A stretch of DNA of 41,895 nucleotides, taken from positions 1 to 41,895 of the forward strand of contig LPNZ01011243.1 in the NCBI GenBank assembly GCA_001655205.1, given 5' to 3'. Under the pieces are notes generated by a model. The model had not been told where the DNA came from and did not search any database. It saw nothing but the letters and a program-made list of their open reading frames with translations. Numbering within the stretch: position 1 is the first letter of the stretch; the number at the start of each line of letters is the position of its first letter. Below are positions 8,301 through 31,900 of the stretch, one piece after another. The stretch comes from Lenisia limosa (taxonomy: Eukaryota > Protista > Breviatea). The position numbers and the translations under genes were made by a program.

Positions 8301-10429
8301 TCTAGCTCAAGGTCTTCGAAGAGGTCGTCAAGCTCGTCGTCTAGGTCGAGATCCAGCTCAAGGTAGACTCGGTCTGGTTTTTGACTTGATATAACTCTAC
8401 ATATATGAATTTATATCAAGTCTGGTCTGGTTTTTGACCCATTAAGCTTCTCGGCCTTCCATTTATGTTTCTTCCTTTTTTATTCAGCAGTGGACGGTCA
8501 TCATCAAGTCGGAGCAGCCGGCGGCATTCGGAGAAGGACTCAGAAGAAAGGTCGTCAAGATCAAAGTCATCACACAGTAGGAGTAGTAGCAAGGGAAATA
8601 GTAGTAGGAGTTCAAGGATTAAAAGGCCAAGGTCTTCATCCAGGTCCAAGTCCCCGGGTTCAAAAAAAAGAAGCAGAAATGAAGATGACAATGCTGAGAT
8701 TGTTGAAGAAGTTATCGTGGAGACCAAGGAGGAAGAAGTCATAGACGTTGAGGAAGGAGAGGTAACTGAAGATGAAAGTGAAGAGAAAAACGAAGTGGAG
8801 GTTGAGGAAAAAAGGGGTGAAGGGGATGGTGAAACTGAATTGAAAAAAGAGGTAAAACCTGAAGAAACAGAGGAGGAGAGAAGGCCAAGAGAAGTTGTGG
8901 AAGAGGTTGAAGTGAAAACGGAGAAACCTGTGTTGAACCTGTTTGGAGGATGTGACAGTGAAGAAGAAGAAGAAGAAGAGAAAAAGAAAGACTTGAAAGA
9001 AACGACTGAGGTAGTTGAGACCAAGGAAGAGAAGAGAGACAACAAAGAAGAAAGGGAAATGAAAGACCATGATTTATCAGTTGAGGCCTTGAAAGAGGAA
9101 GGTGAAGTTGACGAATCAGCGGAGATCTATTCCGAGCTTTCGAAGCTGGAAAAGGCTTTTGACGATGGAGAGTTTGGAGCTGAGCCCGCGCCACCAGTAC
9201 CGATTGAGCCATCAAGATTGGACAAGACTTGTGTTTGGGAGTGCATTGAGTGTCCGTTGCTCCCAACGGGGGTGTGGGTTCAATACCAGAAGAAGCAGGA
9301 GGAAAAACGTGAGAAAGCCGGCAATGAAGTTGATGAGTTCACAGCAATGTTAGAGAAGACTGAGAATGGTGAAGCAAGTGAGGAGAAGCAAGGAAAATGG
9401 GTGTCAGAAGATCAGTTAGAGTTTGAGGAAGCCCAAAGCAACAGGTTCTTGCCTAATTTGGCAGTAGAAGAAATCAAACTACGCGCTCGTATTGAGGTGA
9501 GGTTGGAGTAAGCTTTGTTTAAGGTAGTTCAGTCCTTTTTTTGATTTTGGAAAAAATAAAACTACCCGGCGGAATTCCGAAGGCTCATTGTAATTACTTA
9601 CTTTGACTATTTTTTTCCAAGATCAAAAAAAGGATTGAACCACCTTAAGTCATTCGACTATTCTCATTGCCTTAGGATTGGGAGGAAGGAGCGTTGGCAC
9701 CAGCTTACCTTCGGAACACTCTTCAACGAACATCTGGGACAATTATCGACGTTTTGAAGGCGGCCAGTGAGGGGGGGATTTATCTTAATATTTGAAGGAC
9801 TCCAACTCTATTCTCTCCCTCTTTCTCATAATCTATATTTTACAGACAGCGATTGGGGTTTTCGTTTTTCATCTGCACTGACTTACTTAGATTTACGTTT
9901 GCCCTACAATTGGACAGAAAAAGGAACCGCGTCAATGACGGAGTCTGCGAAGCCTCCACCCCCAGGTTGGGCTATACCTCCTCATTTATCACCCTGCAGA
10001 AGAACTCAATAAGATCTTTATCTTCCCCGAAGTAATTGAGAAGTCTGCTGAAATGTTCCCCCCCGCCCACCCCAAAAACAAAACCGAAGACGCGGCTGAG
10101 TCTGAACAGTGGGTATTGAGGCCTTACACCATTTGCTCTTGGATTGTGTTGCAATCAAGGTTCCTTTCCTTGTAATACTGTATGTTCTCACCCATATTAG
10201 AGATATCACGTCGCAAGCATTTTATTCGGTGTTTGACCAGAACTACAACGCCTACTATTACCTTAACAGATTTACTGTAAGTGGGCGTTCCATATTATGT
10301 CTCTTCTTTAAACAACCATTTTTATTTTGCACCTTCCTCATGTATCACTCATCATTTCAGGGAGACGTGTCATGGACTCCGCCAACATCTGATGAGGTAT
10401 GTTTTTTGGCTCCCAAGCTAATGCGTTAA
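5353..10429 (+). CDS. Large low-complexity protein: N-terminal RVxF motif, central RS-rich and Glu-rich regions, C-terminal WW domain (may be two genes)
   Basis: A phase-consistent exon chain can be built from MSARRRVSFNEIP (ATG 5353) through SSRSSKRSSSSSSRSRSSS, the 8465-9496 E-rich exon and DWEEGALAPAYLR to FYSVFDQNYNAYYYLNRFTGDVSWTPP (WW-like). 3' end uncertain, near the gap at 10585. Confidence 0.6.
9523..9644. mobile_element. 122-bp MITE-like element with ~40-bp TIRs and TTAA target-site duplication, in an intron
   Basis: TTAA(9519-9522)|GGTAGTTCAGTCCTTTTTTTGATTTTGGAAAAAATA ... TATTTTTTTCCAAGATCAAAAAAAGGATTGAACCACC|TTAA(9645-9648); arms are reverse complements with 3 substitutions and a 1-nt homopolymer difference. 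Lies in intron 9497-9675. Confidence 0.8.
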
Positions 10430-13941: not shown

Positions 13942-14289
13942 GGTTACCCTTTCTTGCTATCTACGTGAAGCAATTGATCACCAATTGATTCCTCCAAAAA
14001 AAAGCAGGGAAAACGGCAAGGCTTCAGCAGGATGCAGGAACTACAACATCAAGCAAGTTGGAGGAAAGATTGTTTCTTCTCTTGCAGTTCTCTGGTCTCT
14101 GTGTAGTACAAGTGTAGTACAGACAGAGAGAACAATGAATGGAAACGAAAGACAGAGAAATGTGAGAAATGAGAGAAGACTAAAAGACAGTATAACACTG
14201 GTCCAGTTCTCAGACCGGATTCAAAAAATTACGGCGGCGAAGCAGAAGAAACTTTCATCGGCTGTTATTTTGGATCACTTCTATCGTAT

Positions 14290-14371
14290 GACTAGTTGGC
14301 CGAGTGGTTAAGGCGACAGATTAGAAATCTGTTGGGTTCTGCCCGCGTAGGTTCAAATCCTGCACTAGTCG
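14290..14371 (+). tRNA. tRNA-Ser, anticodon AGA
   Basis: Acceptor stem GACTAGT/ACTAGTC, discriminator G, D-arm TGGCCGAGTGGTTAAGGC, anticodon stem ACAGA/TCTGT with loop TTAGAAA, long variable arm, T-loop GTTCAAATCC; 82 nt, no intron. Confidence 0.97.
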
Positions 14372-14372
14372 A

Positions 14373-23749: not shown

Positions 23750-26618
23750 ATGGCAATGACTGTCTTTTACTGTGAGTCGAGATTCCAATTTCTACATTAA
23801 ATACTTTGAACTAGGAATAAGGGTTATAATATTAACAATTTACAAGTTTTGTATTCATATTTGACCAATTCAGATGAGTGGATTAGGAGTATCGTATCAG
23901 CCCTCTTCTTACCAACCCATACATTGCCAAATTTACCGCCAAATAAAATATGGATGGTATGAAACTAATAATTTTGCATTGGTTGAAAACCAAAGTATTC
24001 AATTCTAATCATGATTCTGCTGAAAGTGAATAAGGATGACAACCTAACAGGTCCGAACTTATCTCAGTATCCTCTTGGGGGTTGCGGCCTTTACCCTGTG
24101 CAAAAGATCCCTAGCCGTAGCCGGGTCTGACATGGTCTTCAAAGGCATTGTAAGCTCTGTCTTAAAGGGATGGAAGGTTTTGCAAAATAGTATATTAGGC
24201 CATCATCATAACCTCTTTTTGCGCTCTTTTGACAGCTAAGGTTCCCGACTTTATCGTTTAGGTTGACATTAAGATGTTTGGACTTCTTAGTAGCTGCTTC
24301 AGTATCGCGTTTTCTATCTCAAAGTTATTTGCTGGTGTGTGGAGGGCATTGAAGTTATTTGCTAGTGTGTGGAGGGCATTGAAGTTATTTGATGGTGTGT
24401 AGAGGGCATTGAAGTTATTTGCTGGTGTGTGGAGGGCATTGAAGTTATTTGCTGGTGTGTGGAGGGCATTGAAGTTATTTGCTGATGTATGGAGGGCATT
24501 GAGTAACTGATGACAGTGCATGTATGTATAATGTCAGATTATGTCATACTTTGTTGATGTATAAGGTTTGGTTTGAATCCTGGGTGAAATAGGATATACA
24601 TAGCTATCATTCTGTTCGTAATGAACAACCCATCTTATAATACGGCTAACACTCTAGCTGTTCTGAGTGACAATATGAGCCCGAAACTGCTCTACTGTTC
24701 AGGTGTATTGATAAGGTTGGTGATTTTTTGTGAAGTTCTGCATTTTTAGTGCTTTTGCTTTTCACAGTCAAGCGGTGTCTGCTGCTTAATCATGGCATTG
24801 GGTGTGTCCAATCACAGCTTTTTCTTTGACAGCTTTGGACTCGATCCATCTCTTGTTATGATTGGCACTTGGAGTATTGTTGGAGTGATTCAGGTATCTT
24901 GGGCTATATTTTTTAGTGATTTCATTTTTTAAAATTAGGCTGACACCTTAGAGCCTAGGATGGGGTCCAATCACTTGCATGCTCACCACATGGTTTCCAA
25001 AGGTTTGCCTGTGTTTTGTCTCCAATATATCTTATTATATTGATCTTGAGATCACGAGTATCTTCGGAATTCAGTTCTCTAGACATCACGAGGCACTTTG
25101 TGGTCAATCGCTGCTGCTATACAGCCCCTCTCTTTTGCTGCCTTACAAATGGCTAAGGATATTCACTTTCTGTAGGAAGGTCATTTATTTCTATTAAAAA
25201 TTGAAAAACTCTGATGCTTTGACAATAATCATTTAGAAAAACAGGTGATGAAGTTTTCCTTTTCTCTGGGCTTTTTTGTGTTGCCAGTTTTCTCTACACG
25301 TTAAATCGCTATCATGATCCAATAAAGGTAAAGGTGTCGCTTGTTTTGCCATTTAAGTGATCTTGCTAGTCTGAGAGTGAATCGATATCGCACACGATCT
25401 TCAAGCCAACCACCCCTGAATATTCTGCCACCCCTTCTTCAAATTACCACCACTGTTTTTTGGGGGTTCCCAAAGCCTCTGTACCTCGATTGTCGCTCGC
25501 TGCTTTAGAGGGTTGTTTCCTTTATTCTCTTAGGTTGGTAGCTATATAATGGGTCAGAAACAAATAACATACGGGTATTTTTGTATCCCTGTCGAAAAAG
25601 TTTCACAACCTCCAGAACATGCCTGACCGAATGGTGGCCTGTGCTTTACCCGGAATTCGCCAAGTTGGATGGAAGCCTATTCCTTATTGAAACCACTGTA
25701 CTGGTCATTGTTTTAAGATTTCAATGGGTGTGTTGACCAGTCTTACCTTTGTAGAAACGCCATTAGTTACAGTGAAGTTTCTGGAGTTATTGGTGGCATC
25801 CTTGCAGGGGTTCTATCCGGTTTGTAATGTGACTCAAGAGTGATTAGATGTATACGGTATTTCTCTCATGAAATGGGAGTGGTGCATAGTTGATTGTAAT
25901 TTTGACTCTCACCTAAGTTACTTTTTTTTAGATAAACTCTTCAAAGGGAATCGTATGACTTGTGGCTTTGTCTTTTGCGTCTTTATGGTGATAGCAATAA
26001 AACTGATTCAGGTAAGAACTGTCAATTAAAGTTGTTCAACTATCGATATGATATTGATATGCGTAGTACTCAGTTATCTAGGTTCATCCTGATGTCCCTC
26101 TGGCTTATGTAATTTTTGGTAGGTGGTAATATATTATGTATATGTACGAAATGACAAATGATATGTTCTGACGATGACAGGGGTAGCTTTTTACGGGCCA
26201 CACACGCTGACCGCCTTGGTCGGGGTGGAGGCTGTGGATAAGAAATCCACAGCAACAGCGGCGGGGCTTGTTGGNNNNNNNNNNNNNNNNNNNNNNNNNN
26301 NNNNNNNNNNNNNNNNNNNNNNNNNNNNNNNNNNNNNNNNNNNNNNNNNNNNNNNNNNNNNNNNNNNNNNNNNNNNNNNNNNNNNNNNNNNNNNNNNNNN
26401 NNNNNNNNNNNNNNNNNATCCTCTGGCAGTTCTTGCCGCTCAGAATCCTTATATTGTGCACCACGTCATGACAGCTCTTTCAATAGGTATGGGAAAGAAA
26501 TATTTTGAAAATAGAATTTATGTCAGTCTCCATTGTGTCAACGTTTTACTGTCAAGGTTGTGCTGTTATCTACGCCCTGTTTCATCATCCCTTTTTCCGG
26601 AAGCCTATTTTTTCTTAG
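23750..26618 (+). CDS. MFS organophosphate:Pi antiporter (GlpT/UhpT/SLC37 family)
   Basis: Spliced: RTYLSILLGVAAFTLCKRSL, FGLLSSCFSIAFSISKLFAAVLSDNMSPK, QSLGWGPITCMLTTWFPKTSRGTLWS, YSEVSGVIGGILAGVLSDKLFKGNR, FYGPHTLTALVGVEAVDKKSTATAAGLVG, paralleling GlpT motifs (QGMGW, ERG, SDKVFRGNR, YGP..L...ALELAPKKAAGTAAG). One gap at 26275-26417. Confidence 0.88.
24322..24501 (+). repeat. Tandem repeat, 6 x 30 bp, spanning an exon end and 5' splice site
   Basis: Unit AAGTTATTTGCTGGTGTGTGGAGGGCATTG with 0-2 substitutions per copy. Confidence 0.95.
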
Positions 26619-26788
26619 ATTGAATGGTAGAGATATTATGTACTACTGTGAGTGAGTTTAGTTTTCTTTTGGCAAGACGGATAGTACATGTTATTTTGTT
26701 TTTCTTCTTGGGCTACCATTATAATGGAAATCTAGAACTGCACCAAAACTGTCTGAAACCTTGGAAACAATCATGTCTAATTCACAAC

Positions 26789-26897
26789 ACTGTGCTCTCC
26801 TCTCAGAATCCAAAGGTCCCCTGAAGGTCAAATTGGTAACCAGGCACTTACTTGGGGCTTTGCTTTAGACTCGTCACCACAATTGGAGATACAATGT
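26789..26897 (-). promoter_or_regulatory. SECIS element in the MsrA 3' UTR, apical loop interrupted by a putative 31-nt intron (26851-26821)
   Basis: Helix I UCUCC(26889-85)/GGAGA(26800-796) with extension; core GUGAC(26877-73)/UGAG(26805-02); helix II GAGUCUAAAG/CUUUGGAUUC (10 of 10 pairs, 2 G-U); unpaired AAA(26861-59); after splicing the apex reads GCCCCAA|GGGAC. Confidence 0.85.
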
Positions 26898-26986
26898 GGA
26901 AGTCCTGCAGTGTCAAGTTTGGACAGAAACATCAAAACAAGGCTAGAATGCCCAATGTTTCCACCAACCTCAAGATTGTTCCATGC

Positions 26987-28361
26987 TTAGTTGTTAAATA
27001 GGTATTTTTGGTGGTAGTCTTCAGCGAGGTAAAAGTCCTGAAAAGGGTTTATTTGGGTTGAGGGGTTGAAACAGTCTGCTATCGTCTTAAAAAGGCTCAT
27101 GCATTTCGCCAAAATCCCTTCAAACAGTTACTGGCTCGAGACTGGTCATACACTGGGGGTTTTTCGCTTTAAAGTGAGCCAACACCTCCGAAGCCTCAGA
27201 CTTCTGCGTTCTGTGTGGTAAGAAGAAAATTACTTGGGCGGAGTAGAACAGATTTGGCATTTCTAATTTGGTGTCCTGAGGAACTATATCAACACATTTT
27301 TAAACATCAAAAACAACTTTATGAATTCTGTCAGAATTAAAAACTTGGGACTACCATATTGTCGAAAAATAGTAGAATAATTTATTATTAACTGTAGCTT
27401 TCTAAAAACCTTGGATAAAATAGCTCAACGGTATAAAATAAGAAAGAACTCTGCCAATATGCTTACTTTCCTGAGTACCAAATAGCCGAGCGATACTGAC
27501 ATGCCCTTCTTCCATAGCTATCATGGTTCTCCAACATTGTCTAAACAGACGTGAAAAAGCACAACATTAGCTGAAAAAAAAAATCAGCCTTAAGGTTAAT
27601 GGTAAGAGATCCCTGGTCACAAACCTTCACTAAAGAGAGGTATGAAACAACAGAAGGGTCGAAATCAACCTGTTTTGTCAACAATGATATGAAAATAAGT
27701 GTGTTCAAAATAAATGCTTGCTTCCGATCAGTGGAACTCCAAATAAAAGCTTGTTAAGACAAAAAGGTACAGATGAACTCAATCATTTACCTCATCTGCT
27801 TACACAACAATATGCAGAAATGTCATAATAAGAGAGAATGAATCCATGTTTTGGCATACCATTATAGATTCAGTATGATCTCCCATGGAGTGGTATGACG
27901 GGTTCTTACTCTGACCCCCTGATTATTAGAGAGACATTAGTTCATGCCACCTGCCACCTTTCACTTACCTGAATATCCAACCCGAGTATCAAGAACACCC
28001 TTGACTTTCGAGAAGAGGACTTCAGGGTGCCAGAATCACCCCTGAATTATTGAATTATAACACAATTAAAATAATCAGTCGACTCATAAGATGGTCCTTT
28101 GGAAGTTGGAGTAAAACATTGTATCCAAATTATAACCTTGAATTACATCATTATTTATCGCAAAGTTGCTTCCCCCTTTTCCATAAAACCATATGTGTGA
28201 TATGATGAATCAGATATTTATTGAGAAGCAACGATTTAAGGCAATAAACTGCTTGTTCACGATTGCTTCTGTATTAAAATAAATCCCATGCAAACCATTG
28301 CAAACACAGCAGCTTGGAAAGACGCAGTGAAGGCTTTCTTAGGGTAGATTGAAAGAGACAT
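26987..28361 (-). CDS. msrA: Selenocysteine-containing peptide methionine sulfoxide reductase A (7 exons, ~150 aa, Sec24)
   Basis: Exons 28361-28296, 28041-27969, 27918-27860, 27669-27625, 27540-27467, 27210-27126, 27037-26987 join in phase to MSLSIYPKKAFTASFQAAVFAMGUFWHPEVLFSKVKGVLDTRVGYSGGQSKNPSYHSMGDHTESIMVDFDPSVVSYLSLVKTMLENHDSYGRRACQYRSAIWYSGKTQKSEASEVLAHFKAKNPQCMTSLEPVTDFYLAEDYHQKYLFNN. TGA at 28038-28036 replaces C of GCFW; VGYxGG, NPxY, DHxE, QYRS and FYxAExYHQKY motifs intact. Confidence 0.93.
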
Positions 28362-28460
28362 TGGACCTCTTGCACTATATTTCAGCTATATTTTGTGTAT
28401 ATTATTATTCCCAATATATTTCTCCTAAAATAATGCTTGTTTCAAGCAAATTCGGAAACA

Positions 28461-28605
28461 AAGCGCAAGAGGGCGCAAGGCGCGCGGGCCACGTTCAGGC
28501 ATAATGCGCCACGCGTACGCAAGATTGTCTATTCTCTTTTACACTCTTTTATTGTTTGTTTCTTTGTGTGATGAGCCAAGGCCCACAACCTCCTCGGGCC
28601 ACAAA
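28461..28605. promoter_or_regulatory. GC-rich intergenic patch upstream of MsrA, candidate promoter elements
   Basis: CGCAAG three times and GGCC(C)AC three times within AT-rich flanks, 100-245 bp upstream of the MsrA ATG. Confidence 0.3.
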
Positions 28606-28949
28606 ACACCAAACCACACAACATTTGCAACTCGCAACATAATTATATACGCTGATGTGCACTCATGGTAAATTCCTAAGTGGTACATAACAAAAAGATA
28701 CAAATCAATATTTTACAACAAGAATCTGTGAAACAATTATCAGAAGCCTTCCAAGGCAAAATTGGGCATTTGACATTCCCTAATCAGTAAGGAGGACGAC
28801 CCAAATCACGGTTTTCGACGGAAGGCACCCTCTCACCCAATTATAATTATGATATCATATCATGAAGTTGTAAACTGCTAATCAATGAATCAACCCTTAC
28901 AGCTTGCTTCAGGAGGGCGAGTAATAGGTTCCGGGCAACGGGCTACTAT

Positions 28950-31900
28950 CTAATACTGGCATTTTACGTCGTAGAACTGGATAAGATTAAAAACTTCATA
29001 ATTATCATTCAAGAGCCAAAAAGTCCCGTGAGGATGCTTTGCATGCAATAGAGCCGCCCTACGAGGCATGACTTGCTGCTTCGCCATGTTTGTAGGCTCG
29101 GGAGTGACAAAGGCTCCTTCACTGAATCGGCTCATCGAGGTCTTTAAGGTGAACAAAAAACGAATCCGATTATTTAACAGGGCCTAACAAACATTTGAGA
29201 GCTGGCGTGACAACATCGGAGTTGGTGATGGAGCGGTCCGGCTTTGGCTTGTGAAAGGAAGAGGCGACGGTATATTTCTTCGTGGTGACGTGGCAGGTGA
29301 TGCTATCGGCGATGTCAACGACGGCGGTTGTGCGTGGAGGCCGCGGGTTTGGTGAAAAATCAGAGGGGAGGGATCCCGATAGTTGTGAGGGGATGGCGCA
29401 GAGTTACGCGCACTACGTGTGTTATGGCCAAAAACGACTTGATCGAAAGATTTGTGTAATTAAGGAACGAAATGATATTATTACACGGTAACAGAAATAA
29501 CCCACCTTGTTCCGGACCCTACAGCTCTGAACGGCATCGTCATTCGCCGGTGCTGGGGGGTGAATTGAACCCTTCGAGGGGAAAGACTAAGTGAAACATC
29601 AAAAAATACTTCAGCATCTGATATTCTTATGATATTTGAACTGTGATTATGTCATGATAGAGCTTATCTTTTGAGTCATTGTTTTCTTCAGGACATAAAA
29701 GATAGGATATAAGCTTCGCTTCCTATAGTCGGAGCATAACCCACGACCAGTCTAACCTCTTGTCCCCACTCCTCCAGGCCTCTTTTGGTCTCCTCGGGGT
29801 CAATCAACGTTCCGTCCTACTGAGATTAAATCCAATTTGAAGATTTTGACAAAAAAGTAAAAAAATAGAACAACTCCTGCAAACCTCAAGGATTCTATCG
29901 GACATTGCAGTTCTCTTGATAGCCTGTGTTGCCGGCGAAATCTCAACTCCATCCTGGCAGGTGAATTGATATGAAGAGAAGCGAGGTGGTGACATTCAGA
30001 TATCCCAGTATTACCTTGATACAGGGGCCTTGCCAAGTCTCTATTCCATGAACTTTGTCATCGCCCTTAATAGTCAATCAAAAGTCAGAGTGTTTAAATT
30101 AGAGTGAACTATTTGGATATATCATATAGAATATCATATGATATATTATGTTGCATCTAAAATACATCAACTTAAAAAATGTCAACAGAACTCTTACAAT
30201 GGCCAACATTTACACCCCAATCAGCAGGGTTTATAGAGCCAGTAGCAACTCTGTACGGTCCTCCCTCTGACAGCTGTTTGGTGGTTACTTTTCAAAGTGT
30301 CCTTATATCTTGCTATTACTTGAAAATACATTTTCAAAAACTGGTATTCAACATGATTCCCGACGATACTGTACATATTAATGTGTCGTCATAATGTTGA
30401 ATAAAACACAGGGACAACTCTTAGTTACCTGAGAGTAGTCATAGAAACGATGACCTTCTTGAGACTTCGGCTGAGTAGATAAGAAGATAGAAACCCCAAC
30501 ACACCTCCTGAGAAACACCATCACCCTTGTTCCACTTTATGTCTCTTTTTGGGTACTTCGGCTGTGAACTGGAGAGGATTTCCTTCATACTGCTAACAAC
30601 ATCATGGGGTAAACTGTGAGACTAATTGGTTAAAACAAGTTAGCTTTGCACTTGCCTATTGAACCCCTCGAAATAATGAACAATAAAGCTCAGGCCTTCA
30701 AAAGTACCTGTTGCTGTTGAGATTGGGGTTTCACCTTGGGTGGCTTCATGGAGTGCTTCTACTATGTGAAAGATTGTGCAAATGAATAGCATACATATTC
30801 ATGCAAAAAGAGATAGCATTCACTACTTGGTAATTTTCTTGCCCCCACAACTACTGTGCAGGATACATAGGAATATATGACCTCAGAAAAGGTGCTACCT
30901 ACCTTGTAATCAATCCTGTATCGTTGCTTCTTCACTGGCTAAAAGAGTCAAAGTTGTCGTGTACTCTTCACAAAACAAATGGAAAATCAGAAATATTCAA
31001 ATATGATATTAGAATCTTACTGTTCACTAGTTCCATTATGCTATCCCTATGTCTTTATTTGTTTCCCTTGATTCTATTTAATGTATTGTTCTTGCTCTCA
31101 GAAAATTATACAATACGGACTTTTGGCATCAACAGCTCCTCTCGGGCTTTCATGGACTCCATCATGCTTGGGAGTACTGACTTAGCCGGCTGGTCAAAGG
31201 ACAACGGAATGGATTCAGTCTGTGAAAGGTCAGAAATACAAATGGCTCCTGCCTAAAAGAGCCCCCTCATACCACTTCATCTTTTAAAAAGGCATCTACA
31301 GATGATAGCATTGGCAGTGAATCGCAGATACGGGATTCGGAATAATGATGAAACTGCAATGTTAACCAAATCCAAGAAAAAATACCGTGAAATGAGAAGT
31401 ACCAAAAAAGGTAAAACACGACACCCGCCTGATGATTCTTTTATTTCTTTTCATTTAGTATCGGTCAATTAAACGCACTCAACAAAATAGGGATATTCCA
31501 AAAAACAAACCTCTGTAGTGTGGAGGCGGGAAATGGGGGTCTGTGCATCCTGGATCAACCGTGCTTCCGGCCCCTTAGTACCTTTCAAAATGGCAATGAA
31601 AGGCGAGATAGGTATAAACACACCAGGTTTGAGCTGTCGACCTGGGTGCGGCCTGATAATCGTGGTTCGTGGAAGCTACTTTGTGATCAAATATTGCGCA
31701 CTAACCTCAGAGGAGCCGACAAGAGCGGCAAATAAGGTTTCAAAAGCTTCAACAAATTCTGGATCGGCTTCATTTACAACTGCAATGGACATTGGTGGGC
31801 CAAGGAAGGGACCAAGACGGACCGGGCTGCCCTGAAGACGATGAAATAAAAGAAACAAGAAAGGGTAAACCAACACGGAAGACAATAACTGACTGACTTC

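Follow-up and report, generated by a model that had tools for sequence, protein, structure and literature searches.

The DNA analysed here, a stretch of 41,895 nt from Lenisia limosa that we call the window, contains on its minus strand a gene, with TGA as the catalytic codon, for methionine sulfoxide reductase A (MsrA), an enzyme that repairs proteins. Human MSRA is a Cys enzyme. The locus raises the question of whether this TGA is read as selenocysteine (Sec), marks a dead gene or an error in the assembly, or stands for an ordinary amino acid. Our answer is that the gene very probably encodes an intron-containing eukaryotic Sec-MsrA of 148 residues, with the UGA recoded by means of a 3′ SECIS element and the organism's own Sec machinery. 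We favour this reading because the TGA occupies the catalytic position of an otherwise intact gene, because relatives also have TGA there, and because the gene is accompanied by a SECIS-like hairpin and the assembly contains Sec machinery and a gene for a Sec-containing GPx.

Structure of the MsrA gene

The original prediction, made from the sequence alone, proposed that seven exons join in phase to encode a complete MsrA of ~150 residues, with the TGA at 28038–28036, second codon of exon 2, as the catalytic codon. Direct reading of the minus strand from 28361 to 26987, checked by script, bore out the exon structure: the seven exons total 447 nt, or 148 codons plus TAA (Table 1). All six coding introns (254, 50, 190, 84, 256 and 94 nt) have GT..AG ends, and the frame is kept by two split codons, G/GG and AA/A. 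The junction of exons 1 and 2 reads A-V-F-A-M/G-TGA-F-W-H-P-E-V. The TGA is the sole in-frame stop before the TAA and aligns with the catalytic Cys or Sec of the relatives, in the context G-U-F-W-H-P-E, so that its assignment as the catalytic codon also holds. The product has two Cys residues, in exon 5 (A-C-Q-Y) and exon 6 (P-Q-C-M). The DNA of the window is AT-rich and eukaryotic in character, with a GC content of about 0.32–0.46 and short introns, and is not human.

Table 1. Position of the MsrA exons and of the SECIS-like element in the window
Feature	Position	Strand	Remarks
Exon 1	28296..28361	-	ATG at 28361–28359; 22 codons, ending ..AVFAM; donor GTTTGC
Exon 2	27969..28041	-	G, TGA (28038–28036, proposed Sec), FWHPEV...GYS; ends in phase 1; matches the PMSR profile
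Exon 3	27860..27918	-	Subfamily signature NPSYHSMGDHTE, with the Tyr and Glu of the active site; closest PDB entries are chains of the C. oremlandii MsrA (E 0.002)
Exon 4	27625..27669	-	VDFDPSVVSY...; aligned to homologues
Exon 5	27467..27540	-	C-Q-Y-R-S-A-I-W block, with a rare Cys before the active-site Tyr; ends in phase 2
Exon 6	27132..27210	-	Linker, poorly conserved; length agrees with homologues
Exon 7, coding part	26987..27037	-	DFYLAEDYHQKYLFNN; TAA at 26989–26987; PMSR profile positions 124–148, 21.9 bits
SECIS-like hairpin	26781..26901	-	Lower helix, GUGA core (26877–26874), 10-bp helix II, CAAA bulge/loop, 3′ GA (26804–26803)
Putative 31-nt intron	26821..26851	-	GTAAGT...CTTCAG; apical part of the SECIS hairpin

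Assignment to MsrA was tested exon by exon and not on the joined protein of 148 residues. The Pfam profile PMSR (PF01625), the check suggested at the outset, matches exon 2 (profile positions 9–30, E 0.004) and exon 7, with exon 2 passing the cut-off of 23.7 bits jointly with its neighbours in frame; a six-frame search of the 49-Mb assembly with the same profile returned these two exons only. Aligned as separate rows, the MsrA exons cover columns 1–128 of the prokaryotic homologues, in order and without overlap. Against four prokaryotic loci, exons 2–7 cover the catalytic domain, and the two split codons account for the single-column gaps. In repeated MAFFT runs, exons 1 and 6 and the termini of the short exons were placed wrongly, and these rows were therefore trimmed from the query alignments. 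The same exons were recovered by tblastn with prokaryotic proteins against the window, at 47–87 % identity. All the active-site residues are present, namely G-TGA-F-W in exon 2, the Tyr of NPSY and the Glu of GDHTE in exon 3, and the Tyr of QY in exon 5, and the DYHQKY block is also found; the motifs downstream of the TGA are thus intact (NPxY Tyr, GDHTE Glu, QY Tyr, DYHQKY), as had been predicted. The seven-exon MsrA is a real, intact gene, and its sequence signature places the product in the NPxYxxxGDHTE subfamily (‘bacterium-like’ or C. oremlandii-type).

Such a locus could also be the pseudogene of a former Cys-MsrA whose catalytic codon was hit by a nonsense mutation: TGA is one step away from TGC and TGT, and no MsrA transcript was found. 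Against this, a script check for the further lesions that had been named as a sign of a pseudogene found none besides the in-frame TGA, across the seven exons and the twelve splice sites, and all the catalytic residues are kept. No transcript, read-level evidence or independent assembly covering MsrA was retrieved by homologue- and exon-seeded protein searches, by a search of JGI metagenomes with a 28-mer from exon 7, by searching at the DNA level the assembly that contains the window or by exact-ORF look-ups; we therefore infer the splicing of MsrA, including removal of the intron in the SECIS hairpin.

Elsewhere in the window, a run of 131 N, which may be a scaffold gap, occupies positions 26287–26417, ~570 nt beyond the point where MsrA stops. 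An ORF of 348 residues (8465–9511) also occurs in an independent ENA metagenome assembly (ERZ3820729 NODE_452, 24.3 kb, our locus L020); the organism has thus been assembled at least twice.

TGA in the subfamily and in the nearest relatives

The motif N-P-x-Y-x-x-x-G-D-H-T-E of exon 3, expressed as a degenerate DNA pattern, identified at least 120 prokaryotic loci (L021–L140). The catalytic codon is TGA in 80/120 of the prokaryotic matches listed and Cys in 37/120, and Sec is therefore a common state in this subfamily and not an oddity. Since TGA is the majority codon state among these matches and also occurs in the nearest relatives, and since a SECIS-like hairpin lies just downstream of the gene (see below), we consider the pseudogene very unlikely. 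The prokaryotic TGA loci among the matches listed are mostly from anaerobes, for example from Desulfobacterota, Syntrophomonadaceae, Planctomycetota and Chloroflexota. The members from CPR and DPANN among the same matches are short Cys forms, with a C-terminal Cys at the end.

Eukaryotic members were also retrieved. Word-index protein searches identified animal proteins of the subfamily containing both PF01625 and PF20939 in insects, a tardigrade, a sea star, an abalone and Capitella; these are long forms with the helical domain, in contrast to the short form of the window. ORFs from protist transcriptomes (MMETSP, EukProt) start at the Met of M-G-D-H-T-E, which is the expected product of a gene caller halted by an upstream TGA. 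In addition, the public calls of the environmental proteins P0008 and P0157, and of ~25 other returned proteins, read G-W-F-W at the catalytic site. Here the callers rendered TGA as Trp, following an alternative code, and database entries for Sec-MsrAs thus look like Trp variants.

The Sec-MsrA of Chlamydomonas has been characterised, and further examples are on record from Strigamia, Daphnia, Ixodes and Branchiostoma (PMC4244043). The fungus Gonapodya prolifera also has one, whose nearest homologue is the enzyme from Alkaliphilus oremlandii (bioRxiv 10.1101/2021.02.26.433065), and a ‘bacterium-like MsrA_b’ with Sec has been described in Mamiellophyceae and Mesostigma (bioRxiv 10.1101/674895). 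Like the window gene, the described eukaryotic Sec-MsrAs combine a catalytic UGA with eukaryotic Sec machinery, a likeness drawn from their descriptions and not from sequence comparison. The original prediction regarded Sec-MsrA as known but patchily distributed; known it is, and the extent had been understated, given its occurrence in algae, a fungus, arthropods, amphioxus and bacteria. As Sec-MsrA is well known from algae, from an early-branching fungus and from arthropods and amphioxus, its occurrence at this locus is unsurprising. Our literature search found no description of selenoproteins from breviates.

The closest match to the window protein, compared exon by exon, is P0008 (66/122 residues identical), a product of 148 residues from a contig of 1.3 kb (L141; ENA ERZ27297427), with its catalytic TGA called W and the context G-U-F-W-H-P-E-V; its own best solved match is the C. 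oremlandii MsrA (E 1e-43). P0191, from a contig of 53.6 kb (L142; ENA ERZ26867466), has G-TGA-F-W-H-P-E upstream of the called ORF and, ~60 nt after the stop, a 3′ hairpin that folds with AUGA, a long helix, AAAA and a 3′ GA. P0157 (L143) has G-TGA-F-W-G and a SECIS-like hairpin in its 3′ region, and P0327 (L151; Logan ERR12120955) has a catalytic TGA and reads GUFWG. The catalytic codon is thus TGA in the four environmental relatives whose DNA was read (L141, L142, L143 and L151). An ungapped SECIS scan of these relatives matched one hairpin, that of L143; L141 and L151 had no match, and the hairpin of L142 was identified by folding only.

P0008, P0191 and P0327 share with the window protein a short C-terminus, the catalytic TGA and a Cys directly before the active-site Q-Y. 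Among 262 retrieved homologues this Cys was found only in these three, most of the others having Arg. Their coding regions are uninterrupted, whereas the window gene has six coding introns. As identity is only about 54 %, the three proteins and the window protein form a loose grouping and not a demonstrated clade. The motif GUFWH was correctly predicted, but it is not peculiar in comparison with the usual GCFWG, because H after FW also occurs in P0008, in L142 and, among the prokaryotic matches listed, in the bacterial locus L064. The protein had been predicted to end at HQKYL, and in fact extends to HQKYLFNN-TAA. The predicted lack of a C-terminal tail stood, with TAA directly after YHQKYLFNN and no match to PF20939 in the assembly. 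GUFWH and the missing tail are therefore traits common to the loose short-form group, and not defects of this gene.

The SECIS-like hairpin and the Sec machinery

We searched the window with a SECIS pattern of our own, consisting of (A/G)UGA, at least eight uninterrupted pairs, AA following the 5′ arm, and GA on the 3′ side. There was a single match on the two strands of the whole window, at 26877–26803 on the minus strand; shuffled windows gave a mean of 0.33, and the chance expectation of a match within 300 nt downstream of the gene on the right strand is about 0.001. The SECIS-like core starts 110 nt past the MsrA stop and, in the spliced message, about 485 nt past the UGA. Whether folded unspliced or as two separate strands, one for each flanking half, the hairpin shows a lower helix, GUGA opposite UGA in an internal loop, helix II, CAAA and a small apical stem. 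In overall folding energy the unspliced hairpin does not stand out from shuffled sequences (z -0.1), and the core is GUGA, not AUGA. The Rfam model SECIS_1 gave no match in the unspliced genomic sequence from 25000 to 29500, which we attribute to the 31-nt interruption of the hairpin; across the whole genome, it gave a 23-bit match elsewhere and nothing more.

This interruption has the consensus ends of an intron, GTAAGT and CTTCAG, and other genes in the assembly also show tiny introns, of ~20–40 nt. Both features argue against an arrangement in which the gene is a real Sec-MsrA and the 31-nt stretch stays in the message, so that the SECIS either works with an apical loop of 47 nt or fails, making Sec insertion dependent on splicing. 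That arrangement would agree with the unspliced fold, which retains helix I, the core and helix II, and with our having retrieved no evidence of removal of the intron. We nevertheless consider it unlikely, and regard the 31-nt stretch as a putative intron.

The hairpin also bears on the quality of the sequence. If the true codon were TGC or TGT, the gene would encode an ordinary Cys-MsrA and the TGA would be an error of sequencing or assembly; an ENA contig that overlaps the window stops near window position 24375, short of MsrA, and does not reach the codon. Such an error, however, would have to coincide both with a SECIS-like element downstream and with the TGA state of the relatives, which makes it highly improbable.

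The original prediction also inferred that the organism has Sec machinery, and the assembly indeed contains genes for tRNA-Sec, SepSecS and SelD, as well as a Sec-GPx. The tRNA-Sec gene (72.5 bits; G000:C10503:15553-15638, corresponding to L003 1501-1586, minus strand) has the anticodon TCA and is of the eukaryotic type, with stems of 9 bp (acceptor), 6 bp (D) and 4 bp (T). It is flanked by a TATA-like box ~30 nt upstream and by a T run downstream; a long T-rich microsatellite, (T7-8 C)n, follows the gene. Exons of SepSecS, with tiny introns between them, and exons of SelD were also found. The glutathione peroxidase (GPx) gene (G000:C4094, about 15429; L019, minus strand) has introns of about 100–250 nt and, at the classical Sec site, the sequence N-V-A-S-K-TGA-G-K-T; ORF tracks would cut short this second selenoprotein gene as well. 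A candidate Sec thioredoxin reductase, identified by a match to Pyr_redox_dim (G000:C6671:7193-7697, L145), was rejected: it is glutathione-reductase-like, has short introns and ends in ...EELVTMR-TAG.

The assembly is a mixture of protist and bacterial DNA, and the machinery genes were assigned to the same organism as MsrA by composition. In trinucleotide composition, the machinery and GPx loci correlate with the window at r 0.93–0.97, compared with r 0.83–0.98 for 3-kb pieces of the window itself and about -0.4 for two bacterial loci. This evidence is weak but consistent, and suggests that the contigs with the machinery and the contig with MsrA come from one organism.

The presence of tRNA-Sec and SepSecS is also relevant to a different reading of the TGA codon, namely that this organism has reassigned it to an ordinary amino acid, either Cys, as in Euplotes, or Trp, with no Sec involved. 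No clear TGA stop was seen in the few genes examined, with MsrA ending in TAA and the glutathione-reductase-like gene in TAG, and public callers gave W for the homologous TGA of P0008 and P0157. On the other hand, TGA was confined to known Sec positions, those of MsrA and GPx. No in-frame TGA occurs in the conserved exons matched for SepSecS, SelD and GPx, and the TGAs reported in one other match resemble tiny introns. A Trp at the catalytic position would, moreover, inactivate MsrA. The argument against reassignment is indirect, because no clear case of TGA as a stop was found, but we give this possibility hardly any weight, the least of those considered here.

The window also contains a tRNA-Ser (AGA) gene at 14289–14372 (+). 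This gene and four other contigs have in common a score of 35.2 bits against the tRNA-Sec model, suggesting that they contain identical copies of the gene.

Proposed recoding and recycling, and the short form of the enzyme

On the reading that we prefer, a eukaryotic Sec-MsrA, the UGA would stand 24 codons into the spliced message and be recoded as Sec, the signal being the SECIS hairpin at the distances from the TAA and the UGA given above. Decoding would be carried out by the organism's own machinery of tRNA-Sec, SepSecS and SPS. As inferred from the family, the selenolate would attack Met-S-sulfoxide and be converted into a selenenic acid. Two routes of recycling can be envisaged: a reductant of the glutaredoxin or thiol type might act directly on the selenenic acid, as happens in the 1-Cys enzyme from C. 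oremlandii, or one of the two internal Cys might join it in a selenenylsulfide.

The best solved matches of exon 3 alone are the chains 4w8c and 4lwj-4lwm of the MsrA from C. oremlandii (Clostridium/Alkaliphilus oremlandii; CoMsrA). Of these, 4LWJ is CoMsrA and 4W8C is CoMsrA with its helical domain deleted (PMC4333827). CoMsrA reportedly exceeds its Cys version 20-fold in activity, lacks a resolving Cys and is recycled by glutaredoxin, not by thioredoxin (PMC4333827). Deletion of the helical domain inactivates the enzyme and collapses its active site (PMC4333827). The window protein shares with CoMsrA the NPxYxxxGDHTE signature, Sec in G-U-F-W and the absence of a C-terminal resolving Cys pair. 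They differ in that CoMsrA has no Cys at all whereas the window protein has two, and is thus not of the 1-Cys type, and in that CoMsrA uses the bacterial Sec insertion system whereas the window gene has introns and a SECIS-like hairpin in its 3′ UTR. They also differ in length: CoMsrA is 209 residues long and carries a helical domain (PF20939) at its C-terminus, whereas the window protein stops just past YHQKYL, and PF20939 (MsrA_helical) had no match anywhere in the assembly at E ≤ 10. Judged by its sequence, the window protein is a natural short MsrA without the C-terminal helical domain.

It is conceivable, although we consider it rather doubtful, that the window protein and its few environmental relatives constitute a distinct short-form lineage of Sec-MsrA, which would have dispensed with the helical domain and gained the Cys of C-Q-Y, this residue resolving the selenenic acid as a selenenylsulfide. 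The role of this Cys as the resolver of the selenenic intermediate is speculative. If such a lineage were real, a different recycling mechanism would exist inside the ‘bacterium-like’ Sec-MsrA subfamily, and the gene might have been transferred from bacteria to protists, with introns and a eukaryotic SECIS added later.

A natural Sec-MsrA without the helical domain fits awkwardly with that domain being essential in the C. oremlandii enzyme. For the organism, these results indicate that the protist uses selenocysteine, and that at least two of its antioxidant genes, those for MsrA and GPx, are missed or truncated by ORF-based annotation.
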